A stretch of DNA of 64,000 nucleotides from Mobula birostris (lineage: Eukaryota): NCBI RefSeq assembly GCF_030028105.1, contig NC_092370.1, positions 94,446,969 through 94,510,968 of the forward strand, in the 5' to 3' direction. The notes beneath the pieces are model-generated. The model was not told the origin of the DNA, did not search any database, and saw nothing but the letters and a program-made list of their open reading frames with translations. The position numbers and the translations under genes are program-made. Below are positions 30,942 to 63,559 of this stretch, piece after piece. Positions within the stretch are counted from its first letter, which is position 1. Each line of letters opens with the position of its first letter.

Positions 30942-33263
30942 TCTACGTTGTTCAAACAAACTGGCTTGGTGCTTCTCAATGGAGTCTTTCCTAGTTGATT
31001 TGAATTGGGAAACTTTTGAGCCCAGTGATTAGTTTGCAATGCACTATTGCCAGACATTACAGAAGAGGCAACAGCTCCAATGTGGCTTATGAGGGTATTT
31101 TTCAGGCTATCAGAATCATAAGGTCTTAGAGCTTGAAAAGAGGCCCTTCAGCCTACCAAGGCCCTGCTAAACATCCATTTGTTCTAATCTACTTTTACTC
31201 ATGCCACACTCTCTCCTCACACCCACACATGAGGGGCAATTTAACCCTACTCAGTCTGTGTTTATCCAAATACTTTTATATACAATCCCTTAAAACGCCT
31301 TCCAACAATGTATCCACTATTGATGTCAGGCTCACTGGCCTATAATTTCGCAGCCTGGAGCCTTTCTTAAACAATGAAACAACATTTGCTATCCTCCAAA
31401 CCTCCAGCAAACTTGCAGGGTAAATTCTATCATATTATAATCACCCTCTCCTAAGGGTTCCTTTACCTTAAGCTGTTTACTCAAATTTGGTTTATTGCAC
31501 AGCATGAAATCCAGAATTGCCATTTCCCTAGTGAGAGCCATCTAGTAGGGATACTGTACATACATTCCACATAACAATGTGTAGATCAACCGGAAAAATC
31601 AACTCCTGTGACAACTTGATTTTTTTCAGTCTATTTGCATATTGAAGTCCAACATTACCATTTTAACATTGTCTTTCTTTCTTCCTTTTTTAATCTCTTG
31701 TTGTTATGTGCACCTCACATTCTGGCTTCTATACACTGTATATAAATCCCACCAGGTTCTTTTGAGACAAGGAGGTGAGACAACTTTTTGAGATTAATAT
31801 AGGAAGTCAAGGCTCAAGGACTTGAAAGTAATATTGCAAAAAAAGCCACATAAACTCACACACAGTTGGAAGATACAGATTTGAAGTAATTGGTTAAGAG
31901 CCAGAGAGGAGGTGAAAGTTCTTTTACCCACTACACCCAGAATGCTTTACATGAAAGTCTGTTGTCACATGCTCATATAAGGACTTAGGGTCAACAAATG
32001 GTTTTTTATGTAAATAACTTTATTTTGTAATATTTCTGAATAAAGTATATTTTTGGGAAAAATAGCTCCTTATGCAGCTCTCTCTAAAGTTTGACTAAAC
32101 TTTCATAAAATCCCTTGAGGTAACCACTGCATAAAGATGCCACCTAAATTGGATGTGTTTCTTTAGCTGTTGTGGAAGTATGAGTTGGTAATGACTTTCA
32201 AAAGGAAATGAGGTTAGTGGTAAAGGGGAGACAATTGCAAAGAACAAGCAAGTGGAAATACTTAAGACAGTTCTTTCATAGAAGTCACAAGACATAACAA
32301 ACTGAATGCCCTTCTGTACTGCATTCTAAAGCAATTAGACTATCTGCTTAAGTAATAGCAACTTTACCCTTTTCATGAGGAATACACATGGACTGCAATG
32401 CATATTTTATATCTTTTCATCAGACATGCTGGATTTAAATCCAGTTCTCAAAATTGGGAATGCTGGAATCCAGTCTCCATAAATCTTCCCATTGAGCTGC
32501 CATTTAATATTAAATCTGGAACAATCAGCCCAAGAGCAGCTGGTAAAGTTTGCTGCTGTTGGTTTAATTGTTCTGTACTTATTATGTTCATGGAGAGTGA
32601 TTAACTGAAAAAGCCAATACACGGCTTCACTCATGTCTTTGTGTTGAACAAACCCCTCTAATTTGGCATTTAATTAATGATGTACTTATAAGGCAATAAT
32701 GGTGGCTTGTGCATTATATAGAAATAGGGGAGCAGTGTGAGGACAGTATTAAGTAGTGAGAGGTTTACTCTGCAGTTACTTGTGCTCTACCTGACCTAAG
32801 AAATATAGATATCACTTGCTGTTCAGGGGATACTGATTTTTTTTTTCTCCAAAAATACTTTATTCAGAAGTATTACAAAATAAAGTTATTTACATACAAG
32901 AAAAAAACATTTGTTGACTCTGAGTCCTTATTCAATAAAGGTATTTACAATAAAATTATGTGTTGGCTCTCTGTTCACTTACAAATGAAATATGTTTACA
33001 ATAAACCGTTCATTTACTCTCAACCTGTTCAGGGGCTACTGATGAACTTGCTCTACACAAAATTTTAACAAAATGAAGGACGAAAAGGAGATAGCAGATC
33101 CCAGCTGTACACAATTCCTTATAAGGTAGCGATATCACCTCTCCATTGCAATTGAAGCTGAATACATCATGTTGTCAAGACCTTACAAGGCATGAATGGT
33201 CACAAAAATCTAATACATCATAATGGATACCTCATATATTTAAGCTGTGAAAGATATTAAATA

Positions 33264-33271
33264 TATTTAAA
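33264..33271 (+). promoter_or_regulatory. TATA-like box of the Z1-like gene
   Basis: TATTTAAA about 60 bp upstream of the ATG; a second candidate tatatttaag lies near 33235. Confidence 0.45.
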
Positions 33272-33326
33272 CAAAGACAAGACGCTGGGATTTAAGAGTC
33301 AAAAGTAAGGTGGATGAGACACAGTA

Positions 33327-33491
33327 ATGAAGCGCTCTAAGCCAGTTAAGAAGACAGAAACTTGTTATTTACGGAGGCGGCACTTACGACGATTATGTCT
33401 AACCAAGAGGGACAGGTCTAAAATATATCGAAGAAGATGCCACATTAGAAGATTGCCAAAAAGAAGAAGAAGAGGGAGAAGAAGATGTTAA
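33327..33491 (+). CDS. Scylliorhinine Z1-like Cys/Arg-rich protamine, 54 aa: [54 protein letters not shown]
   Basis: Hand-translated, below the ORF-track cut-off; ATG...TAA, intronless; [10 protein letters not shown]...[19 protein letters not shown] pattern matches catshark protamine Z1 as I recall it; AATAAA at 33621. Confidence 0.88.
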
Positions 33492-33620
33492 GAATTGCTT
33501 GTCAGTCTTCATCCAACAAGAACCATTCCTAATGAGTTTTCTCAAGAAACGTTCACTGTTTGTGATGAAGTACTCCCTGAATTCAATACTCCTGCTGCTT
33601 CTTTCACTGAAGTCATTTTG

Positions 33621-33626
33621 AATAAA
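33621..33626 (+). terminator. Poly(A) signal of the Z1-like gene
   Basis: AATAAA 130 bp after the stop, preceded by TTCACTGA...TTG. Confidence 0.7.
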
Positions 33627-34686
33627 ATTCAAATCAAATAACTATTGTGTACCTTGACTCTAATGTACTGAACTGAGTTGGAGAGGATCAGTAACTTTAA
33701 ATTCCTTAGTGTTATCATTTCAGGGTATTTGTCCTAGGACTAGCATATAAGAGTCACTACAAAGAAAGCACAGCAGTGCCTCTATTTTTTTTAGAAATTA
33801 GCACAAATTCAAATTTACATCTAAAACTTTAAAAAACTTCTGCTGAGGCACAGTGCGGACTATCATGACAGATTCTGTCACAGCTTGCTATGGGAAGGCC
33901 AATGCCCACGAATGGAAAAACCTATAAAAAGTAGTGGATACAGTCCATTCCATCACAGGAAAAGCCCTCCCACCATTTAATACACCTACAAGTAGCACTG
34001 CCACAAGAAAGCAGCATCCACCAGCAAGGGCCCCCACCATCCACGGTCTTTTCTCTCTGCTGCCATTAAGGAAAAGGTACAGGAGCCTTACATCCAATGC
34101 TACCAGGTTCAGGAACAGTTATTGCCCCTCAACCAGCAGGCTCCTGAAGCAATGTGGATAACCACACTCACCTCAACACTGAACTGATTCCACACTTATG
34201 GACTCACTATCAAGGACTCCACAACTCATGTCTTAATATTATCTGTTCTTTATTTATGTGTTTGCACAGTTTGTTTTCTGTTGTTTTAAATTGAGAAATA
34301 GCATGGAATATGCCCTCATGGCCCTATGAACCATGCCATCCAGCAATTTCCCGATTTAATCCTCGCCTAATCACAGGACAGTTTATAATGGCCAAAGAAC
34401 TTACCAATCGGTACGCCTTTGGACTGTGGGAGGAAACTAGGGGACCCAGCGGAAACCCATGCAGTCACAGGGAGAACGTACAAACTCCTTACAGGCTGTG
34501 GTGGGAATTAAACCCAGGTAATCTGTACTGAAAAGCATAGTGCTAACCACTAAGCTACCACACCACCCCGTTGCACATTGGTTGTTCATCTGTCTTTGTT
34601 TTTATTGATTCTATTGTATTTCCTTGTATCTACTGTGAATGCCCGTAAGGAAATGAATCCTGGGTAGTATATGGTATCATATATAG

Positions 34687-35410
34687 CAGCGGTCCCCAAC
34701 CACCGAGCCGCGGACCGGTACCAGGCCACGGGGAAATGATATGAGTCAGCTGCACCTTTCCTTATTCCCTGTCACGCACTGTTGAACTTGGACATAGGGT
34801 TGCCAACAGTCCTGTATTTGTTGGGACATCCCATATATTGGGTTAAATCGGTTTGTCCCATATGGGACTGCCCTTGTCCCGTATTTCCCCCGCTAGGGTA
34901 GAGTGTTCCTACGAAACCTTTCATGCCGAAATGGCGTGAAGTGAAGGAGCAATTACCATTAATTTATACGGGAAAAGTTTTTGAGCGTTCCCAGACCCAA
35001 AAAGTAACCTACCAAATCATACCAACTAACACATAAAACTGAAAATATAGTGAAAGCAGGAATGATATGATAAATACACAGCCTATATAAAGTAGAAATA
35101 ATGTATGTGCAGTGTAGTTGGGAAGATAAAGGCAAAACCGATTTGTGGAAAAAAATCAACACGCACGCGCACACAAGTGCCCGCGCAAGGCTTTCATGGT
35201 CATGGTAGTCTTTCCTGGGGTAAAGTGTCCCAGGACTGCTAGTTTTATCGCTTATTTGGGGATGAGAAAATTGGCAACCCTTACTGTAAAAGACATGTTG
35301 AGGTGAGTTTAACCCTACTTGAATATACCTCCCCCCACCGGTCGGCCGGTCTGCAAGAATATTGTCATTATTAAACCAGTCCGCGCTGCAAAGAAGGTTG
35401 GGGACCACTG
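34687..35410. mobile_element. Non-autonomous hAT (Charlie-like) element
   Basis: TIRs cagcggtccccaacc ... ggttggggaccactg; 8-bp TSD ATATATAG on both sides. Confidence 0.88.
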
Positions 35411-35447
35411 ATATATAGACTTTGATAATAAATTTATTTTAAGGTTT

Positions 35448-37745
35448 CAGAATCAGAATCAGATACATTACAATACATAATAAAAATCTATAAAATACAA
35501 TAAAAATACATAAAATAAATTAAACAAGTAGTGCAAAAAGAGCAAAAAATAAATAGTGAGGTAGTGTACATGGATTGATTTTCCATTCAGAAATCTGATG
35601 GCGGTGGAGAAGAAACTGTTTCTAAGACATTGAGTGTATGTCTGCAGGTTCCTGTGTCTCCTTCTTGATGGGAGCAATGAGAAGGGGGCATGTCCTGGGT
35701 GATGGGGGTCTTTAATGATGGATGCCACCTTTTTGAGGCATCGCCTTTTGAAGATGTCCTCAATACTGGGGAGTCTGCTGCCCATGTTGGAAATGGCTGA
35801 GTTTACAGCTCTTTGCAGCTTTTTCCGATCCTGTGCAGTGGCCCCTTTGGAACAGATAATGATGCAACCAGTTAGATGCTCTCCATGGTACATCTGAGAG
35901 TCCATGTGAGAGTCTTTTGTGACATACCAAGTCTCTTCAAACCCCTAATGAAGTATCGGCACTGTCGTGCCTTCTTTGTAATTGAATCAATATTTTGGGC
36001 CCAGGACAGGTCTTCAGAGATACTGACACGCAGGAACTTGAAACTGCTCACCCTTTACACTGCTGAAACCTCGATGAGGACTGCTGTGTGTTTCCGTGAC
36101 TTCTACTTCCGGAAGTCTACAATCAATCAGGTCCACAATCTTACCAATGTTGAGTGCAAGGTTGTTGTTTTGACACTACTCAATCAGTTGATCTATCCTT
36201 CTCGTAGATACCTCCTGATCACCATTTGGAATTCTGCCAACAATACTTGTGTCATCTGCATTTGATCTGTGCCCAGTTGCGGGTGTAGAGAGTAGAGCAG
36301 ATGGGGAAAGCACGCATCCTTGAGCTATGCCCACGTTGACTGTCAGTGAGGAGGAGATGTTATTTCCAATTTGCATTTCTGTGGTCTTCTGATGAAATGG
36401 TCAAGGATCCAGTTGCAAAGGGAGGTACAGAGGCCCAGGTTTTGGAACTTTCTAATTCGTACTGAGGGTATGCTGGTGTTGAACTCTGAGCTGTAATCAA
36501 TAAACAGCAGGTGATCCGATGCCAAGTGGGGAACCAATGAGGTTGCATCTGCAGTGGACCTATAGTGGCAATAGGCAAATTGCAGAGGCTCCATGTCCTT
36601 ACTTAAGGCAGGAGTTGATCCTAGCCATGACCAACCCCTCAAAGCACTTCAGCACAGTAGATGTGGGTGATAAGTATTGAGGCAGATCATCCTGCTCGTC
36701 TTGGGCGATGCCATGATCGTCACCTTTTTGAAGTAGGTGGAAACCTCCAACTACAGCAGTGAGAGATGTCCTTGAAAATCTCCCACCAGTTGGTTGTCAC
36801 AGGTTTTCAATGCCCTACCAGCTCCACCATCAGGGCCTGATGACTTAGAAGGGTTATTTCTCATGAAAGAAATTATAATGTTGGCCTCTGAGACAGAGAT
36901 TACAGGGTCATCAGATGTGACAAGGATTTACACAGGTGTAGTTTTACTCTCCCTTTCAAAGCATGCATAAAAGTCATTTAGCTCATATGGAAGTGAAGCA
37001 TCAGAGAAATTCATGGTGTTAGGTTTTGCCTTGTAGGAAGTAATAACCTGCAAACCCTGCCAGAGCCAACATGCATCCAATTCCACCTCTAACTGCAATC
37101 AGAATTGTTTTTTTGCTCTTAAGATAGCCTTCCGTAGGGTGTACCTGGATTTCTTGTATAGTTCTCTATCAGCAGTCTTAATGTCACAGATACAGCCCGC
37201 AGCAGACTACGAATCTCCTAGTTCATCCATGGCTTTAGATTTGGGTATGCCCGGTATGTTATCGAAGGCACACACTCATCCATACAGGTGTTGATGAAGT
37301 TGGTGAAAAGTGGGGTGTTTTCAATCAGATCAAAAGATGAATCCCTGTATATAGTACAGCCCACCAATTCAAAGCAATCCTATAAATGCTCCTTTGCCTC
37401 CTTTGACCATACGTTCTTGGTCTTCACCACTGGTTCTATGGTGTTAGTCTCTGCCTATATGGAGACAGTAGAAGCATAGCCAGGTGATCAGACTTTACAA
37501 GGTGCAGGTATGGGATGGTATGGTGAGCATTGTTGGTGGTGGCATAACAGTAGACAAGTTTGTTGGCTCCTCTGGTTCCACAGGTGATATGTCGATGGTA
37601 GTCGACAGAGACTTCTTCACGCTGGCCTAGTTGAAAACCTGCAAAGACAAGGAAGGTATCAGAATTCGTTTCAAGACTGCTGATCATGGTGTTCAACGCC
37701 TCCAGTGCCTGTCTGACATTGGCCTGAGATGGAATATACACCACT
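35448..37745 (-). mobile_element. Rex1/Babar-type LINE, degenerate (EN to RT to 3' end)
   Basis: ORFs 35468-35905, 36176-36376, 36343-36642 and 37436-37786 carry Rex1 EN and RT motifs. Confidence 0.8.
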
Positions 37746-38690: not shown

Positions 38691-38699
38691 CCTTATTTC

Positions 38700-40199: not shown

Positions 40200-42620
40200 G
40201 TTGCAAGCTGACCCCTGATGGCCTTGGTTGCTCAGAGAGTTGGTAATGGTAATCGTGAAAGAGATTCGGATCCACGATGTCTCTTTCTGGCACCCAGCAC
40301 CTTTCCTCCAGTCCACCAGGTATTGCTGAACACCTCCAGCACCTCACGAGTCCAAAAGTCTTTTCCCCATGAAGCCTGTTCCCCCTCAATAAACCTGGGT
40401 GGTGGGGAGGCGATAGTTGTGGGGCCAAGGGGCTGGTGCAGACAGGTTTTAATTCAGAGATTTAGAAGGTGGGGTTGATCTTTAGGGTCTTGGGGAGCTG
40501 CAGGGTGTAAGCCACTGGGTTTACTTTCCTCAGGATCTCAAAGAGACCAAAGAATTTGGGTGCCAACTTTCTAGATTCCACTCGGAGAGGCAAATATTAA
40601 GTGGACAGTTAGACCTGTTGCCCAGGCTGTAACGCGGATCGCAGACTTCTCCTTTGGCTTGCCTTGGTCTCCGCTCTCCGCTCTCCACATGGAGGCCAGC
40701 AAAATCTCTCTTGCCGTCATCCATTACTGCCTGCAGCATTGGACAAGTTCTTCTTCCTCAGGGACCCCAACTTCGGTTTCTTGCTCTAGAAAGAGGTGGA
40801 GGATAACAAAACTGGCACTTGAATAGAGACATCCCATGCACCGAGTGCTGTACAGTATTGTGGGTGATCTCTGCCCACATTAAATGGTCACACCACTGCT
40901 CAGGTCTTTCCAAGGCCAGGCATCTCAGGGTACATTCTAAATCTTGAATGGTCTGCTCCATCTGACCGTTGGACTGTGGATGAAACCCAGAGGAAAGGCT
41001 TGCTGTTATTCCTATCAGTTTACGGAGAGCCTTCCAGAAATGTGATGTGAATTGTTTACCATGATCTGAGACAATGTCCACTGGGGATCGTGGATCCTGA
41101 AGACCTGGTACAGGACAACCTCTCGTTCCAGTTCATCAAATTTATGGGACGGGGCATCTGGATTCTGGTTCTTCAACCGCAGTTGATAGGTCAGGATGAA
41201 ATTAAACTGGTTAAAAAACAAAGGCCACCTGGCCAGCCTGGAATTCAGCCTCTTGGCTTCCTGAATATAGGGCGGGTTTTAATGGTCAGTTCAAATGATA
41301 AAAGGGTTCTTGGCCCCTTTGGGCCAGTGAAGCCATTCCTCCAAAGCTAACTTAAGCACAAGAAACTCCTGATTCCAGATGTCATAGTTTCTCTTTGCCA
41401 GGGATAGCTGCCTGGAGAAGAATGCACACAGGTGCAGTTTGCTGTCTGAAGGTAACTGTTGAGACAAGACAGCACCTACTCTGATGTCTGAGGTGTCCAC
41501 CTCCCCAATGAAGGGAAGGTCCAGGTTAGGAGAAAGAAAGATGGGAGCTGTTGTAAATGGCTGTTTAAGCTCTGTGAAAGCAGCTTCTGCTTCAGTAGTA
41601 CAGACAAAAGGGCCCGTAGATTTCTTAGTTAGAGCCATCAGCATTCCTAATGAACTTCTGGTAGAAGTTAGCAAATCCCAAGAGTCGTTGGACCTGTTTG
41701 ATATTGGATGGTGGTGGCCAGTCTCTGACTGCCTGGGTCTTGGTAGGGTCCAACTCGAGATTACCATTAAGGATGATGAAACCCAAATATAAAACAGTCC
41801 TCACATGAAACTCAGACTTCTCCATCTTGACGTAAAGTCCATGGTCTAGTAGCCTCTTTAAAATGTCTCTGATGTGAGTGATGTGCACCTCCATGGACTT
41901 TGAGAAGATTAAGGTACCATCCAAGTAGACGAAGGCACACTTATGGAGAGTATCCCGGAGCACAGTGTTTATAAAGGCCTTGAAAACAGCTGGGGTGTTC
42001 ACTGGGCTGAAGGGCATAACCTGGTACTTGTAGTGTCTATTGAACGCCATCTTCCACTCATTGCCCTCCCTGATACAGACCAGATTGTAGGCACTCTGGA
42101 GATCTAATTTTGTGAATGCCCTCACTCCTTGGAGCATCTTGAAAGCCATATTCATAAGAGAAAGGGGGTAGCCATTCCTGGTCATTATGCAGTTTAATCC
42201 CCTGTAATTAATGCACTACAGCAGGCTCCCATCATTCTTTTGTACAAAGAAGAAGCTTGTGCCAGCTGGTGAGGTGGAGGGACTAATAAAGTCCATGGCA
42301 AGACCTTCCTTTATATACTCCTCCATGGCATTTCTCTCCAGGCCTGAGAGCACGTACAAACGACCCTGTAGAGGACAAGGACCAGGCAGCAGTTCCATGG
42401 TACAATTGTAGGGTCAGTGTAGTGGAAGAGTCGAGGCCTTTCCCTTGCTGAGAACCTCCTCTAAGTCCTTCTAAATATTGGGGATTTTGGCCGGTTTGGA
42501 TGGTGTTACCTCCTCCGGACTTCACTTTGAGGATGACTCCTGAGACCTTTTTGGTGACAGGGGTGATTCAACGGGCTTCAGGGTCCACAAGCAACAGCAG
42601 TGAGGTTCTTACAGAGGGTT
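40200..42620 (-). mobile_element. Degenerate chromodomain-bearing Gypsy (Tf2/sushi-like) pol without recognisable LTRs
   Basis: RT (FTKLDLQSAYNLV, YQVMPF, FVYLD), RNase H (EVDTSD..VGAVLSQ..CAFFSR..NYD), integrase (IVSDHGKQFTSHFW..SSGFHPQSNGQ), chromodomain-like YLVDW...WVPERDIVDP. Confidence 0.85.
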
Positions 42621-42639
42621 CTTGCATCCCCAGGATTAG

Positions 42640-43220: not shown

Positions 43221-44672
43221 CCAGGTAAATTTGAGGGCAGGGTGGAAATTGGAGGCAAAGTGGATGAAGTCAATGAGTTCAGCATGGGTGCAGGAAGCAG
43301 CACCAATGCAGTCATTGGTGAAAAAAAAAATAAGGAATTATAATAATGGAGTAGAATAATTGTGCCGTTTTCTGGGAATGTTGCTGTGATCCTTATTGTT
43401 TTTACTTTATATTATTGATTGATTTCAGGACAGCAGCTCTGAAATAATGACACAAATACATAGAATTTGCTGAGAAAATAACAGATTTAAGCTGTAAGGA
43501 TATGTCTGGAATGACCTAGCCATTTATGATTAGAAAGAAATACTTTTATGATGTTCATATCTCCATAAATTAACCTGCCTTGTGACTTTTGCACAAGAAA
43601 TTGCTGAATTTGCAGAAAGATGGGGTTGGTATTTAACAGAGCCAGTATCCCCTTGATTGCATGTTCCTTCAGTGCTAGCCATTATTTCCAGTTCAGAAAC
43701 AGAACAAATAAAACTATGGTATCTTGGTCCAGCAGTTAGTAAATCAAATTTAAAAGCTTTATATTATTCTTACTTTTCTTTTGTCTTCTTTGCTCTCTCC
43801 TTTATTACAACTTTTTTTTCTCTTGGTGAAACTTAACTTCTCCAATCAATGGTACAGGGATTGTGCATATAGACTCATTAGCAACCCAGCAGCGATGCAG
43901 TGACAGAGCACACACCACCAGGTTCAGGAACAATTACCCTACAACTACCAGGCTCCTGAATCAGCGTGAATAACTTCATCTGTGCACCATAACTATGAAC
44001 TGATTCTACACACAAACTCTTCAAGAACTCTTTACAGCTCATGTTCTCAGTAATATTTCTTATTTACACAAATAATTATCTTTAGCACATTGTTTGTTTG
44101 TCAGTGTACATTTATGAATTTTTTTTCATAAATTCTGTTGTATTTCTTTATTTTCCTGTAAATGCCTGCAAAAAAACGGATCTTAAGATAGTATTTGGTA
44201 ATATATACGTACTTTGATAAATTTTACTTTGACATTGAGGTTCAGATACAGTTAATATCCTACAACAATCAGGCTCTTGAACCGACATGGATAACTTCAG
44301 CAACCACTACTTTGAATGGATTCTAGAACCTTCTTGCTGACTCACTTTCAAGGATTCTGGAACTCTTGCTCTCAGCATTAGGTTGTTTTGCACCGTTTGA
44401 TTTCTTTTGCACGTTGGTTATTTGTCAGTTTTTAACTGTTTATGTATAATTTTCAGTAAATTCAACAGTATTCATTTTATTCCTGTAAATGCCAGCAAGA
44501 AAATGAATCTTAAGGTAGTAGTATATGGTAACATGTATGTACTTTGATAATAAGTTTACTTTGAACTCCTACATGACCATCATGATGACATGACAATAGG
44601 GCAGGATGCTGAAAAGTCTATAAAACTAGAGACTGAACACTTCCAAAGCGGTCAGTGGCTGAAGGCTGAAGC

Positions 44673-44789
44673 ATGAAGAGGTGTGTGCGCAAACGCAGGC
44701 GCAGGCGTAGAAATGGCAAGAAACCTTGCAAACGAAAATCAAGTACTATTGTCAGAGCACATCTTGTTCATCGGCGAAGAGCTGGGTGA
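44673..44789 (+). CDS. Truncated duplicate of the Z2-like protamine, 38 aa: MKRCVRKRRRRRRNGKKPCKRKSSTIVRAHLVHRRRAG (possible pseudogene)
   Basis: 44579-44783 reads identical to 46003-46207 (promoter, TATA, 5' UTR, 37 codons), then GGG TGA from unrelated flank; lacks the native 3' UTR. Confidence 0.7.
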   Translation: MKRCVRKRRRRRRNGKKPCKRKSSTIVRAHLVHRRRAG

Positions 44790-46042
44790 TTGAAATTCAG
44801 GTAAAATTAACTAGTTTGATGTCATTTTTTTGAATTGCTGTTCTTATTAGTGCTAATGTGCTTTAGCAAAGGAAATTTGCCATCTTTCTCTGGACAAGCC
44901 TTTATGTGAAATCTTTAATAACTCATATTTACAGTGCATGGCCCCATAAAAAAGCCCAGCTAGCCATTCAGTTCAAGGGCAATAAATGCAGGCCAGTCAT
45001 GGGATAATTGGCAAAAAAACAATTAACCCTATTTCTTTAACTGATACAATCATTCACCATTTGGTCCTAGATTTCCAACTGCACTCACTATGCTGCTAGC
45101 ATCACACACATTAGTAATGGATATTCACGCTGAAAGTTGTGGAGAATAATCTAACTCTTGGTTCTCCACTCAAGGAGACTTGGTGCCATTCCTGAACTTG
45201 GCTGAATAGAACAACTGGATAAATGTTGCCAGGCCATATTGAAGTAACACCTTAGTGACTTGCTTTGTACTTTGACACCTACTTCAATAATATTGACTGA
45301 GAATAGCAGAGTTGGAATTTTAATACCTAAAAAATACTCTCCATTGGATGGAAACAAATGTTTCATGCATTGACTTCAAATAGTTTAGCTTAAATGTAGA
45401 AAACACTAAAGCTGGCCAACAAGATTTTGCTGAACCATATATAGTGTTATACTATATGATAATCAAGAGAAATTCATGATCAAATTGTACAAGCAATTGT
45501 TTGGGGAGACCAGACAGGTACCAACAGAGCAAAGAGAAGCTTCCAAAGACTTTGATTTAAACTTAAGAGGGACAGAGGTTCTTTACTTCGAGTGAAAGGT
45601 ATGTTGTGGGAAAACTCAATTGTCTCTCGGTAAATTTAGAATTATCAAGTTAAATTAAATCCAATCAGCCCTGGCAGATAGGACACAAATTTGATTGTGT
45701 TCAACATTTCACTGGTGAGAATATATACATGGGAACCCTTTGTAAGTTTTAACCCATTGTTGTGTTCCAGGATAATTGTGATCTGAATAGAAGTAGCTTT
45801 GCACGAAATACCTTAAAATCAGTTATCTGCTAAACATATACAATCCCAAAACAACTTGGCCCAAGTGCCAAATATAGACAAATACCTTAAAAGGCAGTTT
45901 GGGAAAAAAATACCTTAATAGGCAATTATATGTTGAACATACACAGCCCAAAAAAAATTTGTGACAAAATGCCAAATATGGAAAGTAGCTGAAACCTGTA
46001 AAATCATGATGACATGACAATAGGGCAGGATGCTGAAAAGTC

Positions 46043-46049
46043 TATAAAA
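46043..46049 (+). promoter_or_regulatory. TATA box of the Z2-like gene
   Basis: TATAAAA 54 bp upstream of the ATG, with TGATGACATGACA (CRE half-site-like) about 35 bp further upstream. Confidence 0.7.
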
Positions 46050-46096
46050 CTAGAGACTGAACACTTCCAAAGCGGTCAGTGGCTGAAGGCTGAAGC

Positions 46097-46228
46097 ATGA
46101 AGAGGTGTGTGCGCAAACGCAGGCGCAGGCGTAGAAATGGCAAGAAACCTTGCAAACGAAAATCAAGTACTATTGTCAGAGCACATCTTGTTCATCGGCG
46201 AAGAGCTTCAAGACGTTGTCATCGGTAA
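46097..46228 (+). CDS. Scylliorhinine Z2-like protamine, 43 aa: MKRCVRKRRRRRRNGKKPCKRKSSTIVRAHLVHRRRASRRCHR
   Basis: Hand-translated, absent from the ORF track; MK.C.RKRRRRRR...CK..SSTIVRAHLVHRR.A.RRC matches catshark protamine Z2 as I recall it; TATA upstream, AATAAA at 46370. Confidence 0.9.
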   Translation: MKRCVRKRRRRRRNGKKPCKRKSSTIVRAHLVHRRRASRRCHR

Positions 46229-46369
46229 GAAGCTATGACAGATCAAAGAAAAGAACCATGTTTTGAGCTATTCGAGTACTAAAGAAGATGTGCACAAGGC
46301 AGACTGGATGAGGAAACTGCTTGAATTGAAACTTCGTTCTTCACACCATGTTCACTGATTCAAATTGAA

Positions 46370-46375
46370 AATAAA
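46370..46375 (+). terminator. Poly(A) signal of the Z2-like gene
   Basis: AATAAA 142 bp after the stop, followed by a motif shared with the S1-like gene. Confidence 0.75.
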
Positions 46376-47167
46376 AGCCTACAAGTACTGAGACTTGGAA
46401 AAAATATTTTGTTTGACTCAAGTTTTTTCAAATATAATTGCAGAATTATTTCATTACATGGTCAAGGGTGCTTGAATTGAAAGCGAAAGTGGTGCAAATG
46501 AACCTCCTATAGATGTCAGTCAAGAGAACATTGAAACACTCATTCTGTTGGGAGGGCATTCCAGGACTTTGTAGATACTGTTTCTATGCATCTGCTAGTC
46601 TATGACTAGATGGTAGAGATAATGTATGATCGGTAGGATTCACCATTCTGTTGGTTGAGACTGGTGTAAGTGCAGGGGGATTTGATGAGTGAAAGACAGG
46701 GAGAAGGTGTGAAAGACATCCCAAAGCAGGCCCATCATCAACCATTGTGCTGGTGTGGTCATTGCCATACTAAAGGAAATGTAAGATTTACTTTGCAGTC
46801 AAACCACAATGTAATAATGAACAAGAGAAAATCTGCAGAAGCTAGAAATCCAAGCAACACACACCAAATGCTGGAGGAACTCAACGGGCCAGGCAGCATG
46901 TATGGAAAAGAACACAGTCAATGTTTTGGGACGAGATCCATCACCACTCCTGATGAAGGGTTGACTGTACTCTTTTCCATAGATACAGCCTGGCCTGCTG
47001 AGTTGGACCACAAGGCAAAGGAGCAGAATTAGGCCATCTGGCCCGTTGAGTTTGCTCTGCCATTCAGTCAAGGCTGATCCTTTTCTTTATCTCCTCCTTA
47101 ACTACTATTCCCGGCCCTCTCCCCAAAACCTTTGATGCCATGTCAAATCAAGAACCCATCAATCTCT

Positions 47168-48210
47168 TGTCATGGCTCGGTCCGTGAAGTCCGCATTCTG
47201 GTTCACGGTCTGGTCCATCGACCCTTGCTCCAGGTTTTCCTGTCTACCCTGTTTCTGTTTCTGTTGAGCACTAATTGAGGCAGCTGATTCTTGTTGGGGC
47301 TGGCTGTATAAATACCTCCAGAAACCAGGGGCATGGCTGCTGGATTGTTCTTGTCCTTACTCCTTGTATCCCTTCCCCTCTCTTCTGTTTCCTTGCCTGA
47401 AGCCCTGCCTTGTCTTGCTGGTAACTCCTGCCTCGCCTCGCCTGTAGTCTTGTCTTGGAGCCACCCTGTACCTAGCTCCCTTCCTGTCCCTTGCCTCCGT
47501 CAGGTAGGCCAGGCCGTATTGCCGTTACCCTGCAGTGGGTTCTGTCCCTTTCTGTCCCTTGCCTCCGTTGGGTAAGCCAGGCTGTGTTGCTGTTACCTAC
47601 AGTTGGTTCTGTCCCTTCCTGTCCCTTGCCTCTGTCGGATAAGCCGGGCTGTTTTGCTGTTACCCTGCGGTTGGTTCTGTCCCTTCCTGTCCCTTGCCTC
47701 CGTCGGGTAAGCCAGGCCATATTGCCCTTACCCTGTGGTGGTTTCTGTCCCTTCCTGTCCCTTGCCTCTGTCGGGTGGAGATCCGCGCCCTGCCCAGGAG
47801 GAGCTTCAAGACCCCAAGCCTCTAGCTGAGCCTCGCCTCATGCCGAGCTTCAAGACCCCAAGCCTCAAGCCTCTAGTCTCAAGTCTCTGGTCTCCAGCCT
47901 CACCTCAAGTCTCAAGCCTTACCTCGAGTCTCAAGCCTGAAGACTCCAGCCTCGTCTTGCCTGCCAGCCAAGTCACGTCCTTGCCCGGTTCTGGGGTCCG
48001 AGCCAGAGGCAAGACCCAGATTCTGGGTCCTTATACAGTCTCTGGCTTGGAGTCCAAGCCCTGGTTCCTAACTCTCTTGTCCAGTCCTGTTCCGGGTTCC
48101 CGGTTTTCATGTCCATGTCCTTACCCTCACCCTGTATCCTAGTCCTGTCCCTAGTACTTCAGTGTCTGTGTCTTGCACTTGGGTCTGTTCCCAGCCACCA
48201 CCTTATGACA
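47168..48210. mobile_element. Solo LTR, about 1.04 kb, with an internal minisatellite
   Basis: Termini TGTCAT...ATGACA; 5-bp TSD TCTCT at 47163-47167 and 48211-48215; about five copies of a ~65-bp unit at about 47478-47775. Confidence 0.8.
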
Positions 48211-53645: not shown

Positions 53646-53689
53646 AACATAATTGTATAAGGGCTAAGAGTGTTGTAAAAGCAAGCCTG

Positions 53690-56567
53690 AAGGCTTTGTG
53701 TGGCAATGCAAGGAGCATTCGTAACAAGGTGGATGAATTGAATGTGCAGATAGTTATTAATGAATATGATACAGTTGGGATCATAGAGACATGGCTCCAG
53801 GGTGACCAAGGATGGGAGCTCAACATTCAAGGATATCCAATATTCAGGAGGGATAGACATGAAAGAAAAGGAGGTGGGGTAGCATTGCTGGTTAGAGAGG
53901 AGATTAACACATTAGAAAGGAAGGACGTTAGCCTGGAGGATGTGGGATCAATATGGGTAGAGCTGCATAACACTAAGGGGCAGAAAACGCTGGTGGGAGT
54001 TGTGTACAGGCCACCTAACTGTAGTAGTGAGGTTGGGGATGGCATTAAACAAGAAATTAGAAATGTGTGCAATAAAGGAACAGCAGTTATAATGGGTATC
54101 TTCAATCTACATATAGATTGGGTGAACCAAATTAGTAAGGGTGCTGAGGAAGAGGATTTCTTGGAATGTATGCGGGATGGTTTCCTGAACCAACATGTCA
54201 AGGAACCAACTAGACAGCAGGCCATTCTAGACTGAGTATTGAGCAATGAGGAAGGGTTAGTTAGCAATCTTGTCATGAGAGGCCCCTTGGTAAGAGTGAC
54301 CATAATATGGTGGAATTCTTCATTAAGATGGAGAGTGACATAGTTAATTCAGAAACAAAGGTTCTGAACTTATAGAAGGGTAACTTTGAAGGTATGAGAT
54401 ATGAATTAGCTAAGATAGACTGGCAAATGATACTTCAAGGGTTGACGGTGGATATGCAATAGCAAGGATTTAAAGATCCCATGGATGAACCACAACAATT
54501 GTTCATCCCAGTTTGGCAAAAGAATAAATCAGGGAAGGTAGTGCACCCGTGGCTGACAAGGGAAATTAGGGATAGTATCAATTTCAAAGAAGAAACATAC
54601 AAATTAGCCAGAAAAAGTGGCACACCTGAGGACTGGGAGAAATTCAGAGTCCAGCAGAAGAGGACAAAGGGCTTAATTAGGAAAGGGAAAAAAGATTATG
54701 AGAGAGAGCTGGCAGGGAATATAAAAACTGACTGTAAAAGCTTTTATAGATATGTGAAAAGAAAAAGATTGCTTTGACAAATGTAGGTCCCTTACAGTCA
54801 GAAACAGGTGAATTGATCATGGGGAACAAGGACATGGCAGACCAATTGAATAACTACTTTGGTTCTGCCTTCACTAAGGAGGACATAAATAATCTTCCGG
54901 AAATAGTAGGGGACCGAGGGGCTAGTGAGATGGAGGAACTGAGGGAAATACATGTTAGTAGGGAAGTGGTGTTAGGTAAATTGAAAGGGTTAAAGGCAGA
55001 TAAATCCCCAGGGCCAGATGGTCTGCATCCCAGAGTGCTTAAGGAAGTGGCCCAAGAAATAGTGGATGCATTAGTGATAATTTTTCAAAACTCTTTAGAT
55101 TCTGGACTAGTTCCTGAGGATTGGAGGGTGGCTTATGTAATCCCGCTTTTTAAAAAAGGAGGGAGAGAGTAATTGGGGAATTATAGACTGATTAGCCTAA
55201 CATCAGTGGTGGAGAAAATGCTAGAGTCAGTTATCAAAGATGTGATAACAGCACGTTTGGAAAGCGGTGAAATCATCGGACAAAGTCAGCATGGATTTGT
55301 GAAGGGAAAATCATGTCTGACGAATCCCATAGAATTTTTTGAGGATGTAACTAGTAGAGTGGATAGGGGAGAACCAGTGGATGTGGTATATTTGGATTTT
55401 CAAAAGGCTTTTGACAAGGTCCCACACAGGAGATTAGTGTGCAAACTTAAAGCACACGGTATTGGGGGTATGGTATTGTTGTGGATAGAGAATTGGTTGG
55501 CAGACAGGAAGCAAAGAGTGGGAATAAATGGGACCTTTTCAGAATGGCAGGCAGTGACTAGTGGGGTACCGCAAGGCTCAGTGCTGGGACCTCAATTGTT
55601 TACAATATATATTAATGACTTAGGCGAGGGAATTAAATGCAGCATCTCCAAGTTTGCGGATGACACGAAGCTGGGTGGCAGTGTTAGCTGTGAGGAGGAT
55701 GCTAAGAGGATGCAGGGTGACTTGGATAGGTTAAGTGAGTCGGAAAATTCATGGCAGATGCAACTTAATGTGGATAAATGTCAGGTTATCCACTTTGGTG
55801 TGAAGAACAGGAAAACAGATTATTACCTGAATGGTGGCCGATTAGGAAAAGGGGAGGTGCAACGAGACCTGGGTGCCATTGTACACCAGTCATTGAAAGT
55901 GGGCATGCTGATACAGCAGGCGGTGAAAAAGGCGAATGGTATGCTGGCATTCATAGCGAGAGGATTCGAGTACAGGAGCAGGGAGGTTCTACTGCAGTTG
56001 TACAAGGCCGTGGTGAGACCACACCTGGAGTATTGTGTGCAGTTTTGGTCCCCTAATCTGAGGAAAGACATTCTTGCCATAGAGGGAGTACAAAGAAGGT
56101 TCACCAGATTGATTCCTGGGATGGCAGGACTTTCATATGAAGAAAGACTGGATCGACTAGGCTCATACTCGCTGGAATTTAGAAGATTGAGGGGGGATCT
56201 TATTGAAACATATAAAATTCTAAAGGGATTGGACAGGCTAGATGCAGGAAGATTTTTCCCGATGGTGGGGAAATCCAGAACGAGGGGTCACAGTTTGAGG
56301 ATAAAGGGGAAGCCTTTTAGGACCGAGATGAGGAAAAATTTCTTCACACAGAGAGTGGTGAATCTGTGGAATTCTCTGCCACAGGAAACAGTTGAGGCCT
56401 GTTGATTGGCTATATTTAAGAGGGAGTTAGATATGGCCCTTGTGGCTAAAAGGATCAGGGTGTATGGAGAGAAGGCAGGTACAGGGTGCTGAGTTGGATG
56501 ATCAGCCATGATCATACTGAATGGCGGTGCAGGCTGAATTGCCTACTCCTGCACCTATTTTCTATGT
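53690..56567 (+). mobile_element. CR1 LINE with near-complete ORF2 (APE endonuclease and RT), few stops/frameshifts
   Basis: ORFs 53696-54235 (NARSIRNK..ETW..GVVYRPP..G.FN), 54481-55172 and 55173-56405 (YLDFQKAFDKV, PQGSVLGP, FADD, RTRGH); CR1 3' tail cctactcctgcacctattttctatgt. Confidence 0.95.
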
Positions 56568-57749: not shown

Positions 57750-60160
57750 AAATAACTGAGCAATAAATACTGAAAACATGAGATGAAGACTCATTGAATC
57801 CATAGATTGTGGAAACGCTTCAATGATGGGGCAAGCGAAATTGAGTGAAGTTATCCCCTCTGGTTCAAAAGCCTGATGGTTGAGGGGTAGTAACTGTTCC
57901 TGAACCTGGTGCTGTGAGTCCTGAGGCTCTGGTACCTTCCTTCTGACGGCAGCAGCAAGAAAGGAGCATGGCCTGAATGATGGGCTTCCCTGATGATGGA
58001 TGCTGCTTTCCTGAGACAATGCTTTATACGGCATGTGCTCAATGGTGGGGAGGGTTTTACCCGTGTAATCCAACGGGCCATATCTACTATTTTTTGTAGG
58101 ATTTTCCATTCAAGGGAAATGGTGTTTCGAAACTAGGCTGTGATACAGCCAGTCATATACTCTCCATTATAGAAGTTTGTCAATGTTTTAGATGTCATGC
58201 AAAATCTTCACAAAATTCTAAAGAAATAAAGGCACTGCTGTGCTTTCTTCGTAATTGCACTTATGTGCCAGGCCCAGAACTGTTCATCCAAAATAGCTGC
58301 ACTGAGAAATTTAAAGTTGCTGACCCTCTCTACCTCTGATCCTCCGATGAGGACTGGTTTCTTCCTCCTGAAGTCAATAATCAGCTCCTTGGTCTTTCTA
58401 ACATTAAGTAAGGGATTTTTGTTATGGCACCACTCCAGATTTTCAATCTCTCTCCTATACTGAGTCATCATCACCATTGATTTGGCCTAAGAGAGTGGTG
58501 TTGTCAGCAAACTTTAATATGGCATTGGAGTGTAAATGTGTAGAGCAAAGGGCTAAGACACAGCTTTGTGATGCACCTATGCTGATGGAGATTGTGGAGA
58601 TGTTCTTGCCAGTCCAAAATGACTGGGGTCTGCAAGTGAGGAAATCATAAACAAGAGAAAATCTGCAGATGCTAGAGAACTCAACAGGCTAGGCAGCATC
58701 TAGGAAAAGAGTACAGCTGACGTTTTGGGCCAAAACCTTTTGGAAACATCGACTGTACTCTTTTCCTAGATGCTGCCTGGCTGCTGAGTTCCTCCAGAAT
58801 TTTGTGTGTGTTGTTAAATCGAGGATACAATTGTACAAGGAAGTATTGAGGCCAAGGTCTTGAAGTGTATTGATTAGTTTTGAGGGGATGATGGTATTGA
58901 ATGCTGAACTGTAGTCAATAAAGAGTAATCCTGATGTTCCAGGATTGAGTGAAGAGTGAAGAGTAAATTAGATTATGAGGACACTCAGTCTTTGTCTGTT
59001 GTCATTTAGAAATGCATGCATTAAAAAATGATACAACGTTCCTCCAGAATGATATCACAAGGAAACACAGGATAAACCAAGACTAAAACTGACAAACCCA
59101 CATAATTATAACATATAGTTACAACAGTGCAAAGCAATACCATAATTTGATAAAGAGCAGACCATGGGCATGGTAAAAAAAAAGTCTCAAAGTCCCGATA
59201 GACTCATCATCTCACGCAGACGGTAGAAGGGAGGAACTCTCCTGCCATGAACCTTCAAGCACTGCCAACTTGCCGATGCAGCACCATTGGAAGCACCAAA
59301 CCGCAGCGGACTCTGAGTCTGTCCGAAAACTTTGAGCCTCTGACCAGCCCCTCCGACACAGCCTTTCCGAGCTCCATCCTCTGCTGAGTGCTTTGAGCCC
59401 GCCCCGGCCGTCGAGCAGCAAGCAAAGCGGAGGACTCAGGGCCTTCCCCTCCAGGGATTCTGGACCACACAGTAGCAGATGAGATGGCATTTGTTGTGGA
59501 TCTGTTGCTCTGGTAGACAAGTTGCTTTTCAGTCAGGAGTTGAACATGTTTCGTCACCAGCCTCTCAAAATGCTACTTCACAGTGGATGTAAGTACTACT
59601 GGACGACTTTCATTGAGGCAGGCACCAGTTCATTGAGAACTGGTGCCCACGTTCTTCTTAGGCACCAGTGTAACTGAAGCCTGCTTGAAGAAAGTAGTCA
59701 CCTCTGACTGCCGCAGTAAGACATTATAGATCTCAATGAACACTCCAGCCAGTTGATCAGTACTTGGTCAGGTACCTCGTCTGGGTCAGACTCATTCTGT
59801 GGGCTCACCCATCTGAAGGCTGCTGCGCAAACGCCTGAAAGACTGAAATCACAGGATCATCTGGAAGTGTGAGTGTTTGTGATAGCTCCTCCATGTTTTG
59901 ACGCTCAAAGTGAGTATAGAAGGCATTGAGCTCATCTGGAAGCGAAGCCCTGTAGTTGTCTGTATTACTTGATTAAACTTTATAAGCAGTAATAGCATTC
60001 ATCCCCTGCCACAACTGTTGAACATGTTTTGTTGATTCGAGTTTAGCCCAGAATTGCCACTTTGCCCATGAGATGGCTTTTCAGAGATCGTACCTGGACC
60101 TCTTGTAACTTTCCTGGTCACCAGACTTGAATGCCTCTGATCTGACCCACCTGTAGACTA
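57750..60160 (-). mobile_element. Rex1-type LINE remnant interrupted by smaller repeats
   Basis: ORFs 57851-58081 and 58208-58477 (LNVRKTKELIIDFRR..VERVSNFKFL); further degenerate RT/EN sequence to about 60150. Confidence 0.7.
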
Positions 60161-60880
60161 CATGCAGATTTTTGCAAAGTTTTTGCCTGTGTTTGGTTTC
60201 TTCAGTGTAGAGGAAACCACTTTGTGGATCACATTTTGAACACTAGGTTGGGAGATTTGTTGTTTCACCTACAAAGAAATATGGACTCTCTAGAAGGGGA
60301 TAAGGAAGAGATGTTGTTATTTACAGGGACATAGTTGATGGAGAGCAGGACTGATGGAGAATGGACGTGAAAGCACAGAGGAACATCTGGAGAAATTTCT
60401 GAAACGCCCGTTCGCTGCTGTTGTTACTGTGTGGTCGGGAATATTTCAGAGGGTAGGCTTCAAAATCCCCGGCCTTGCCTGCTTTTGGCGACGGAGATGG
60501 AGGTCGAATCGTTCGGACAGAGATGGCGCTCAGTACTCGGTGTCGGAGAGCTGATCAGAGCTTGAAGTTTTTGGATGACTCAGGGTCAGATTGTGGTCGG
60601 CACGGCAGGGAGAGTTTTTCTTCCTTCTCCCGTCTGCGTGAGATGTGGGACATTTGAGAAACTTTGAACTTTACTGTGCTCACGGACTTCTTCATCAAGT
60701 TATGGTATTGTTACACCGTTTGTAACTGTATGTTAGAATTATGTGGTTTTGTCAGTTTTTTCAGTCTTGGTTTGTCCTGCGTTTTGTGATATCACACCGG
60801 AGGAAATAATGTATCATTTCTTAATGCATGCATTACTAAATGACAATAAAGGAGGACTACGTGTATTCATAATCATAATA
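58968..60880. repeat. Two oppositely oriented copies (about 58968-59471 and 60330-60880) of one non-autonomous retro-repeat
   Basis: gtcatttag.aatgcatgcattaa.aaatgataca...gatatcacaa at 59000-59060 is the reverse complement of 60785-60845. Confidence 0.65.
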
Positions 60881-62004
60881 ACTCAGCATTCCATGTTATA
60901 GAATCTCCAGGCCTGACAATGGGGGCACATAAAAGAGAATGTGGCACTGTCATTTACAACTGAAATGAGGCCGTGTGGGTAGAACTTAGCAGTAAAAAGG
61001 GGATGATTACGTGCCTTCTAGTAGTCGGGCAAAGTGACAGCAGATATGCGGACAAGTCACAGAGGTGTGCCAACAATAGAAATATAGCAGCAGGGAATTT
61101 CAACTTCCCCAGTATTAACAAGGATTACTGTAGTTTGACAGCTGCAAGCAGGAGAGATTTCTGAGCTGGTGTGTAGATAGTAGACTTAAGATAGTAGATA
61201 ATAGACCTAATTTTAGGGAATGTAGACATGAAAGTGGATGACTAGCTAGTTGGATAGTGAGCATACATTTAGAGGTAGTTATGGAAAGGGATATGCATGG
61301 CCCAGTTCCTGGATTGAGGGAATGCTGATTTTGAAATAAAGTAAAATCTGGTAGAAGTATAATAAAAAAATTGCTAGAGGAAATCAGTGTGTCAGGCAGC
61401 ATCCGAGGAGGGAAACAGACAGTTGATATTTCAGGTGGAAATCTGGCACCTGGATTGAAAGTGTAAGGGGACATAGCCAGTGAGGTGAGGGGAAGGGGTG
61501 AAACAAGAGCTGGCAGGTGACAGGTGGATCCAGGTGAAACAGTGTAATAAGCATTCTGAGGACAGAAGGGCAAAACAAGTCCTTGTCCGATGTATGGGTA
61601 CCCTTTACATTTCCCTGCTTATCATCCCTCTTCACCTGAATCCCGCTGTCAGTCGCCAGCTCTTTTTCCCTACTCCTTCCCATCGCCACTTTATAATGAC
61701 TATCCCCCTTTGCTCTTTCAGTCCAGGTGAAGGGTCTCGATTGTTCTTTTCCCTCCACCTGACCCAGTGAGTTCATCTAGTAGTTGGCTTTTTACCCCAG
61801 ATTCTACCATCTACAGTCTCTTTTTATCTCCTGGTAAAAGTAAGCTGGAAGAGACAGGCCTACATCAGACAAGTGGGAGTCATTTAACTGTGAAATAATG
61901 GACTCACAAAAGGCTGACAGGTGTCAAGGAATATTGAGTTTTTCCAGAGCAAAATTAATACATTGCCAGTTTCTTCAAAAACAGTGTTAACTTGTTTTAA
62001 ACAA

Positions 62005-62300
62005 TTTTTTCCCGGGGCTGAAACGGCTAGCATGAGAGGGCACAGCTTTAAGGTGCTTGGAGGTAGGTACAGAGGAGATATCAGGGGAAAGTTTTTTACG
62101 CAGAGATTGGTGAGTGTGTGGAATGGGCTGCCAGCGACGGTGGTGGAGACGAATCTGATAGGGTCTTTTAAGAGACTCCTGGACAGGTATATGGAGCTTT
62201 GGGTAACCCTAGTTAATGTATCAGGTAAGGACATGTTTGGCACAGCTTTGTGGGCCAAAAGGCCTGTATTGTGCTGTAGGTTTTCTATGTTTTTATGTTT
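62005..62300 (+). mobile_element. CR1 3' fragment
   Basis: RGHSFKVLGGRYRGDIRGKFFTQRLVSVWNGLP; same family as 51058-51330(-). Confidence 0.75.
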
Positions 62301-62696
62301 TATTTTATTTATCTTATGGTACTAAGATATTTACATCTTGATGAATACAAAATATGGTTCTTCAGACCGTACACGGTACGATTACATCACTCACCAAAGG
62401 CATTACAAGTTTTGTCCATATATGGCATGACGTTGGTATAAAGACACTGAAATCCATTGTGTATTGATCAAACTCACCAATAAAATGATATGATCAATGT
62501 ATCAGTGTATTCACCTTATAAGGTGCCATTTACATCTCTATGAATACAAAATATGGCTTCAGACCAAACATGGTATGATTATGTCACTCAACAATGGTGC
62601 TTGCAGGCATTAAAAGCTGCCTACGGGAGCTAACATTCAATTGAAAATCTCTAATCAGTGAGATAGTGTACAAGACAATTTGCTAATCAAGAGGAC

Positions 62697-62963
62697 ATGA
62701 CCAAGTCACGATATCGTACCAGACGCAGCCGACCACGTAACCGATATGGTAGGCGGCTGCGTAAATCAAAGGGTCGAAGGAGAGGGCGGCGAGTCAGCCG
62801 CAGACCTCGCCATGCCTCCTACAGGAGAAAGGTACAGAAGAGTGTGCATCAAAAACGCCGCAGCAGACTCCGAGATGAAATTGAAAATTTGAAAGTAAAG
62901 AACAACAGACGTCTTAATGAATCGCTTAAGCAGCATAGAATGCCCATGAGGGTGCCTGTCTGA
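62697..62963 (+). CDS. Spermatid-specific intermediate (transition-like) basic protein S1, 88 aa
   Basis: MTKSRYRTRRSRPRNRYGRRLRKSKGRRRGRRVSRRPRH...RDEIENLKVKNNRRLNESLKQHRMPMRVPV; the N-terminal TKSRYR and C-terminal DEI.NLKVKNNRRLNESLKQHR.PMRVPV match catshark S1 as I recall it; intronless, AATAAA at 62997. Confidence 0.9.
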   Translation: MTKSRYRTRRSRPRNRYGRRLRKSKGRRRGRRVSRRPRHASYRRKVQKSVHQKRRSRLRDEIENLKVKNNRRLNESLKQHRMPMRVPV

Positions 62964-62996
62964 ATGCCATGATGAAAAGAGTATCACTTGATATTG

Positions 62997-63002
62997 AATA
63001 AA
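62997..63002 (+). terminator. Poly(A) signal of the S1-like gene
   Basis: AATAAA 34 bp after TGA. Confidence 0.75.
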
Positions 63003-63559
63003 AAACAAGTACTTGAGACTTGGAAAACAAAATCTTCCTGTTTCGTTTTACATTTTTCTCAACCTATTAGAAATAGTGAATCAAAAAATTAATCTCAAAG
63101 ACATAATTAAATCTTGTATTAAAAAGGTTCCATCTGCAAAAGAAAGCTACCCTGCAGACCTCTGGCAGTATTCAGTAGTGGTGTCTTATGGCTATGAATG
63201 ATCCTTGGTTCTGATAAATGTACTTTGCAAGAACATCAGGCTGTAGTTGTGCCCAAGTCTGAAATTTAAGGCATTTTGCAACTATGACCTTTGGAGGGTA
63301 TCAAAGTCAAAAGCAGGGTGCAATGGGTGATTGTGACATTTTGACTTATAAATAAGATTTTGGATGAGTGAGTGCCAAGAGGTCACAAGTTAACTGTGAA
63401 TGACAGATAGGGCAGGAGCAGACACAGGCAGCAAATTGGACTGGAGATGGAGGATGAAGGGAGAAGGTCTTTGATGGGTTGTCATGATTTCTTGCGATCA
63501 ATTATTTACCATTCTTTATGCCATAACAGATTGAGTGCATCATGGCATCATCAGAACCA

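Follow-up and report, generated by a model that had tools for sequence, protein, structure and literature searches.

In a 64,000-nucleotide stretch of the genome of Mobula birostris (NC_092370.1, positions 94,446,969 to 94,510,968; hereafter the window), our data point toward a gene cluster encoding basic proteins of sperm nuclei, a reading that we consider likely. It would comprise an orthologue of the spermatid-specific protein S1 of the catshark Scyliorhinus canicula, two mutually unrelated, small, cysteine-containing protamine-like genes (here called Z1-like and Z2-like), and a duplicate of the promoter and 5' half of the latter, all of them antisense in an intron of TRPN1, which codes for a mechanosensory channel (Table 1). 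The four open reading frames (ORFs) share the plus strand and span 33327-62963, that is, they lie within 30 kb. Among all 634 ATG-initiated ORFs of at least 20 amino acids on both strands of the window, they hold ranks 1 to 4 by their share of lysine plus arginine (0.42 to 0.51), and the fifth-ranked ORF, 20 amino acids long, reaches only 0.35. A six-frame scan of the whole window for arginine density found no arginine-dense frame besides these four. Taken together, the ranking and the scan argue that the cluster of basic ORFs is not a chance pattern, and the four small, arginine-rich, plus-strand ORFs described in an earlier note on this DNA are borne out. The same note had suggested looking for S2, Z3, and Z4 in the rest of the intron; within the window, neither the ranking nor the scan yielded a fifth basic gene (candidate S2, Z3, or S4).

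The identity of the cluster is clearest at its 3' end. A search of a collection of 5.8 billion proteins with the 88-amino-acid ORF gave 11 candidates, three of which were proteins with an E value of at most 0.01. The best match was S1 of S. canicula (SSS1_SCYCA; E = 3.6e-31), followed by two unnamed proteins of Callorhinchus milii of 94 and 93 amino acids (UniRef A0A4W3KFX7 and A0A4W3HC88). Full-length identity is 80% to the catshark protein (87 aligned residues) and 66 and 59% to the two Callorhinchus proteins; the alignment is collinear over its entire length, and a C-terminal block behind the basic domain is nearly invariant, with L65, K66, K68, N70, R72-S76, and K78-H80 present in all four sequences. 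The catshark protein has 87 amino acids and the ORF 88 (including the initiator methionine), and in both the N-terminal two thirds are rich in arginine, serine, and tyrosine. They differ in that the catshark protein has one cysteine and the ORF none; each of the Callorhinchus proteins has three. By its sequence, the ORF is a full-length S1 orthologue, as the earlier note had proposed. An identity of 80%, where about 100% would be expected within one species, shows that the window does not derive from S. canicula. S1 of the catshark is known as a protein only, whereas here its gene, signals, and neighbors can be read. The presence of two S1-like proteins in Callorhinchus indicates that the S1 family predates the split between sharks and chimaeras and was duplicated in the elephant shark. 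Apart from these two unnamed entries, the search of the 5.8-billion-protein collection brought up no predicted S1-like protein from shark or ray annotations, and annotation pipelines probably overlook genes of this kind.

Catshark scylliorhinines Z1 and Z2 are cysteine-containing protamines of about 50 and 46 amino acids. The two shorter complete ORFs of the window have the same small, arginine-rich, and cysteine-containing profile, with an arginine share of 37% in each; without the initiator methionine they measure 53 and 42 amino acids, and both are linked to S1. Unlike in the case of S1, sequence similarity to the scylliorhinines could not be demonstrated. When the four ORFs were looked up as exact sequences, either including or lacking the initiator methionine, none of the seven sequences was present in the protein collection. 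A word-index search, which may miss diverged short proteins, found no candidate with three common five-residue words for the 54-amino-acid ORF and a single candidate, not reaching E ≤ 10, for the 43-amino-acid ORF. The catshark scylliorhinines were thus not retrieved for either ORF, no sensitive search of these two having been made. The names Z1 and Z2, given to them in the earlier note, are therefore unconfirmed, and orthology to a particular scylliorhinine is a candidate only. None of the four window ORFs matched a Pfam protamine or transition-protein family (mammalian P1/P2, TP1/TP2) at E ≤ 10; they gave noise only (Nnf1, 0.17, and zf-SAP30, 0.016, both below the cut-off). The three S1 relatives likewise matched no protamine or transition-protein family at this threshold. 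With neither a homologue nor a Pfam match, the case for the two short ORFs as protamines rests on their composition, their linkage to S1, and one public run described below. No Rfam family was found in the window.

Each of the three complete genes has a TATA-like box and an AATAAA signal, which our reading of the sequence bears out. At the Z2-like gene the box is a perfect TATAAAA, 54 nucleotides 5' of the ATG. The spacing of the two signals implies messages of about 320 to 400 nucleotides, which leaves no room for introns; the genes are apparently intronless.

Shared sequence elements and contig depth

Beyond their orientation and layout, the complete genes have a box of the form CC(A/T)6GG in common, which was first seen as an 11-nucleotide match between the upstream regions of the Z1-like and S1 genes. 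Of the eight such boxes in the window, six precede the start codon of one of the three genes by at most 300 bp. Six boxes were reached by random triples of positions in 8 of 200,000 trials; when the sequences upstream of the three genes were shuffled 20,000 times, this number never occurred (mean 0.064, maximum 2). We take CC(A/T)6GG to be the CArG consensus (SRF/MADS-type). Near-boxes with one mismatch lie beside the true boxes, for example, CCTTACAAGG at about 33181. Nothing in the open literature searched ties a CArG box to the promoters of protamine genes; one paper links CBF-A (CArG-box binding factor A) to Prm2 mRNA but was rejected as promoter support because it deals with RNA binding.

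A second element connects the Z2-like and S1 genes only. Around and just after their AATAAA signals the two are alike (46360-46402 versus 62987-63027), and this likeness includes a motif that agrees in 22 of 23 bases (E = 1e-5); the Z1-like gene has only a faint echo of it. The likeness could be a common 3'-end element, a product of gene conversion, or a trace of shared origin. Judging by these motifs, the three complete genes are probably coregulated as one domain.

Contigs of four public runs (X1 to X4) were placed on the Z1-like region only, 32000-35000. Contigs of X2 cover 33212-33716, which is the stretch from the TATA region to just beyond the AATAAA of the Z1-like gene, with depths of 3.9e4, 1.9e4, 7.5e4, 1.2e5, and 2.6e4 in five bins. 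They differ from the window by about 9%, which indicates that the organism of X2 is a relative of the window species. X1, a different sample of the same organism and study, has nothing at 33111-33615, and the same holds for X3 and X4, with X4 showing a trace depth of 2.85 in the bin 33010-33110. Coverage is zero in all four runs at 32101-32807, and the transposon sequence from 33900 on is covered in all four. The insertions and deletions listed for X2 within the ORF offset each other in pairs (33353/33355 and 33401/33407). Just past the stop codon, at 33515-33520 in the 3' untranslated region, they do not. The X2 profile is what a highly abundant message confined to one sample would give, the kind of run being guessed and the profile being known in a relative only; no run that is recorded as RNA was found to contain the Z1-like stretch. 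The Z1-like gene is a real gene. One further X2 contig, with a depth of 744, spans 33029-33258 and so lies 5' of the presumed Z1-like start; its presence suggests read-through or a minor start further upstream, at roughly 1 to 2% of the depth of the gene body. Sixteen of the 20 differences of this contig from the window are listed, and none of the 16 lies within the CC(A/T)6GG box at 33117-33126.

The truncated copy and the intergenic sequence

The duplicate of Z2 named in the earlier note is a truncated copy. Over 205 bp, 44579-44783 is 100% identical to 46003-46207. The copy is truncated at its 3' end: past 37 codons the sequence diverges, and the frame closes after one codon more. Its AATAAA lies at 44981-44986, 195 nucleotides downstream, a signal absent from the earlier account. 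It has neither the CC(A/T)6GG box nor the common 3' motif, and it begins 3' of all the boxes of the Z2-like gene yet keeps the TATA box. Provided that the copy is real, nature has here supplied a promoter-deletion variant.

An artefact of assembly, with no real second locus at 44579-44789, is unlikely, although of all the alternatives considered here it retains the most weight. It would account for 205 bp of perfect identity at a distance of just 1.4 kb from the full gene and for the lack of similarity between the flanks of the two copies. Against it, the window has no gaps (no N), and both junctions continue through unique sequence. Directly 5' of the copy, 44098-44566 holds two similar transposon tail pieces, whose ORFs end in GNIYVL and GNMYVL, and the 5' breakpoint of the copy adjoins the second of them.

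According to the earlier note, the genes are separated mostly by transposons. Of the nine intergenic ORFs tested in 33-63 kb, four have Pfam matches to transposon families (RVT_1 in two cases, Exo_endo_phos, and RT RNase H); the other five have no Pfam match. In the interval that separates the Z2-like gene from the transposon following it, ORFs that overlap one another at 47333-47829 repeat a peptide unit (…LPCLRRVSQAVLPLPCGGFCPFLSLASVG…), which indicates a tandem repeat with a period near 70 bp.

Table 1. Genes, sequence elements, transposons, and TRPN1 exons located in the window
Feature	Position	Strand	Details
CC(A/T)6GG (CArG-like) box	33117-33126		210 bp 5' of the Z1-like ATG
Z1-like gene	33235-33650	+	TATA-like box 33235-33243; ORF 33327-33491; AATAAA 33621-33626
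Z1-like ORF	33327-33491	+	54 amino acids; 20 Arg, 7 Lys, 4 Cys
LTR (long terminal repeat) retrotransposon remnant	40758-42185	-	Reverse transcriptase, RNase H
Truncated Z2-like duplicate	44579-44789	+	Promoter part (94 bp) including TATAAAA 44619-44625; codons 1-37 followed by Gly and stop
ORF of the truncated copy	44673-44789	+	38 amino acids; 3 Cys
Three CC(A/T)6GG boxes	45885, 45913, 45972 (45885-45981)		212-125 bp 5' of the Z2-like ATG
Complete Z2-like gene	46043-46402	+	TATAAAA 46043-46049; ORF; AATAAA 46370-46375; 3' motif 46381-46402
Complete Z2-like ORF	46097-46228	+	43 amino acids; 16 Arg, 6 Lys, 3 Cys
Non-LTR retrotransposon	53696-56405	+	Endonuclease and reverse transcriptase ORFs
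Two CC(A/T)6GG boxes	62416, 62514 (62416-62523)		281 and 183 bp 5' of the S1 ATG
S1 gene	62608-63027	+	Weak TATA-like box 62608-62616 (CATTAAAAG); ORF; AATAAA 62997-63002; 3' motif 63005-63027
S1 ORF	62697-62963	+	88 amino acids; 0 Cys
Inferred TRPN1 intron	29470-64000	-	>34.5 kb, holds the whole cluster; upstream end beyond the window
Most upstream TRPN1 exon in the window	29356-29469	-	38 amino acids, phase 0; acceptor tttcag before, donor GTAGGA after
TRPN1 ankyrin exon	27104-27000	-	tblastn, colinear with the frog protein
TRPN1 ankyrin exon	21153-20971	-	tblastn, colinear with the frog protein
TRPN1 ankyrin exon	11683-11549	-	tblastn, colinear with the frog protein
TRPN1 ankyrin exon	9367-9269	-	tblastn, colinear with the frog protein
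TRPN1 ankyrin exon	2119-2021	-	tblastn, colinear with the frog protein
TRPN1 ankyrin exon	277-74	-	tblastn, colinear with the frog protein

Position relative to TRPN1

The gene on the minus strand was searched exon by exon, with no joined model. Seven exons of the window lie in order on residues 116-388 of a frog protein of 1,644 amino acids, with identities of 57 to 79% (local tblastn), and the ankyrin exons also match Pfam Ank. The TRP channel transmembrane domain would be encoded past the low end of the window. The frog protein in turn aligns with NOMPC (5vkq) over residues 8-1612 with an E value of 0. The 38-amino-acid exon ending at 29469 was also searched alone against 1.84 billion representatives (phmmer). 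Its best match among solved structures (PDB) was Drosophila NOMPC, residues 194-234; it is about 88 to 89% identical to residues 84-121 of XP_032876287.1 of the skate Amblyraja radiata, a protein of 206 amino acids misnamed ASB18-like, and 65% identical to residues 116-152 of the frog NOMPC orthologue. Exons further downstream align with residues 122-206 of the skate protein. The splice contexts of the exons are canonical (AG/GT). Colinear ankyrin exons and canonical splice sites identify the minus-strand gene, at the level of sequence, as TRPN1, the NOMPC orthologue, and the exon at 29469 as internal, both in agreement with the earlier note. At 20968-21201 on the minus strand, past the TRPN1 exon that ends in DFQN, the frame runs for 15 codons into the intron and stops where the 206-amino-acid skate protein ends, with 9 of the 15 residues alike; this extension may represent a short N-terminal isoform that has been conserved, or else no more than conserved intron sequence.

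In skate and frog, 83 and 115 residues precede the equivalent of the exon at 29469, among them a conserved block and one ankyrin repeat. At permissive settings, the corresponding exons were sought above 29470 on both strands with the N-terminal 83 to 162 residues of five relatives. The minus strand gave 273 hits, which all looked random and of which the best had an E value of 0.45; on the plus strand, the best hit (E = 0.28) looked random as well, and conserved N-terminal motifs are absent from all six frames. Since the exons near 29469 are 69 to 88% identical to the skate protein, an upstream exon, if present in the window, should have shown, and the window contains no N. No upstream exon was thus found between 29470 and 33300, the interval to which the earlier note had tied the nesting, and no earlier ankyrin exon up to the end of the window (29470-64000), as that note had stated. 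Its claim that the cluster is nested in a TRPN1 intron stands in so far as the last exon seen is internal and no upstream exon lies in the window; the host exon on the far side is unseen, and nesting is for this reason inferred rather than seen.

Most likely, the cluster sits antisense in a TRPN1 intron of more than 34.5 kb. It resembles in this respect other antisense genes nested in introns of unrelated hosts: small genes on the opposite strand occupy the longest intron seen (>34.5 kb, compared to 1.7 to 9.3 kb for the introns between the exons of the window). It differs from them in that the upstream host exon lies outside the window. The opposite arrangement, in which TRPN1 starts at or near 29469, by way of a noncoding first exon in 29470-33200 or after loss of its N-terminal exons, and the sperm genes lie head to head upstream of it, is improbable. 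The failure to find an upstream exon anywhere in 34.5 kb, in a window that ends at 64000, is what it would lead one to expect. It is contradicted by the exon at 29469, which begins in phase 0 right behind a good acceptor and has no ATG context, by the residues that precede this exon in skate (83) and frog (115) with their conserved block and ankyrin repeat, and by the intact state of all seven downstream exons. Nesting in TRPN1, a gene of a different tissue than the sperm genes, is of lesser weight for the significance of the cluster because nested genes are common.

Weighing and comparison with the mammalian cluster

Several points weigh against a sperm-chromatin cluster in a TRPN1 intron. 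Likeness of the short ORFs to catshark Z1 or Z2 was not demonstrable by exact look-ups or the word index, and neither ORF has a Pfam family at E ≤ 10 beyond noise. In pairwise local alignment, the Z1-like, Z2-like, and S1 proteins give z values of -0.43 to 0.92 against 1,000 shuffles, which is likeness no greater than composition provides, and the idea of paralogues recognizable at the protein level was dropped. The total of eight CC(A/T)6GG boxes in the window is at the level of shuffled sequence (mean 6.73), and their enrichment upstream of the genes was spotted post hoc. Run X2 is RNA by guess only, its tissue is not on record, and it was found via the Z1-like gene itself; contig depth measures expression poorly, and the contig of depth 744 lies 5' of the presumed start. 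Finally, a duplicate that is 100% identical could be an assembly artefact, and the upstream exons of TRPN1 are not within the window.

That S1 alone is a sperm-chromatin gene, with the Z1-like and Z2-like ORFs being other small basic proteins or chance ORFs in noncoding or transposon-derived transcripts, would fit their lack of a homologue or Pfam match, their dissimilarity to S1 and to each other, and the unrecorded tissue of X2, but is very improbable given that they are the two most basic of 634 ORFs, contain cysteine, share the orientation of S1, have properly spaced TATA and AATAAA signals at both genes, belong with S1 by the class of upstream box common to all and by the 3' motif common to the Z2-like and S1 genes, and that the Z1-like gene reaches very high depth in just one of the samples, where its insertions and deletions occur in pairs that preserve the frame.

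Under the cluster reading, a mechanism may be sketched. If S1 and the protamines behave here as they are known to do, transcription of the cluster would begin after meiosis, in the haploid stage. Their arginine-rich products would displace histones, S1 first and transiently and the protamines afterwards, and the cysteines of the protamines would cross-link the packed chromatin by disulfides. Coregulation as one domain may proceed via the common CC(A/T)6GG boxes, 125 to 281 bp 5' of the ATGs, together with the 3'-end element common to the Z2-like and S1 genes.

The mammalian genes PRM1, PRM2, and TNP2 are described as a cluster in a chromatin domain of its own that yields some of the most abundant testis RNAs and adjoins SOCS1 (PMC4869110). 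Protamine genes and a gene for transient histone replacement are grouped in both systems, in the ray co-oriented and within 30 kb. The surroundings differ, being most likely an intron of TRPN1 in the ray and the vicinity of SOCS1 in mammals. The ray genes are moreover apparently intronless, are separated by transposon filler, and have different regulatory motifs. They are also not homologous to the mammalian genes: since no member in the window matches the Pfam models of mammalian protamines or transition proteins, the likeness is one of arrangement and task, not of descent. The earlier note's view of the locus as a chondrichthyan counterpart of the protamine/transition-protein domain is plausible in the sense of a nonhomologous analogue of the mammalian cluster.

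Dogfish sperm proteins have been sequenced as proteins, and searches of the open literature (subscription journals and supplements being outside the scope) found no paper on their genes or genomic arrangement. The proteins are of a known kind; new, with respect to the papers searched, are the genomic arrangement, the conservation of S1 from chimaera to ray, and the common promoter boxes. Cartilaginous fishes diverged from our own lineage over 400 million years ago. It is imaginable, though doubtful, that these fishes own an old sperm-chromatin domain, located in a TRPN1 intron and convergent with PRM1-PRM2-TNP2, in which the intermediate protein S1, conserved from chimaera to shark and ray, would be combined with fast-evolving cysteine protamines, a CArG-like promoter code, and a 3' element. 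If this is true, the transcription logic of their spermatids would be unlike the CREM/TATA logic of mammals. The linkage of S1 with protamine-like genes bears on whether genes for histone replacement were clustered ancestrally or came together by convergence, and compact promoters with a simple common motif may serve as a system for haploid gene expression outside mammals.

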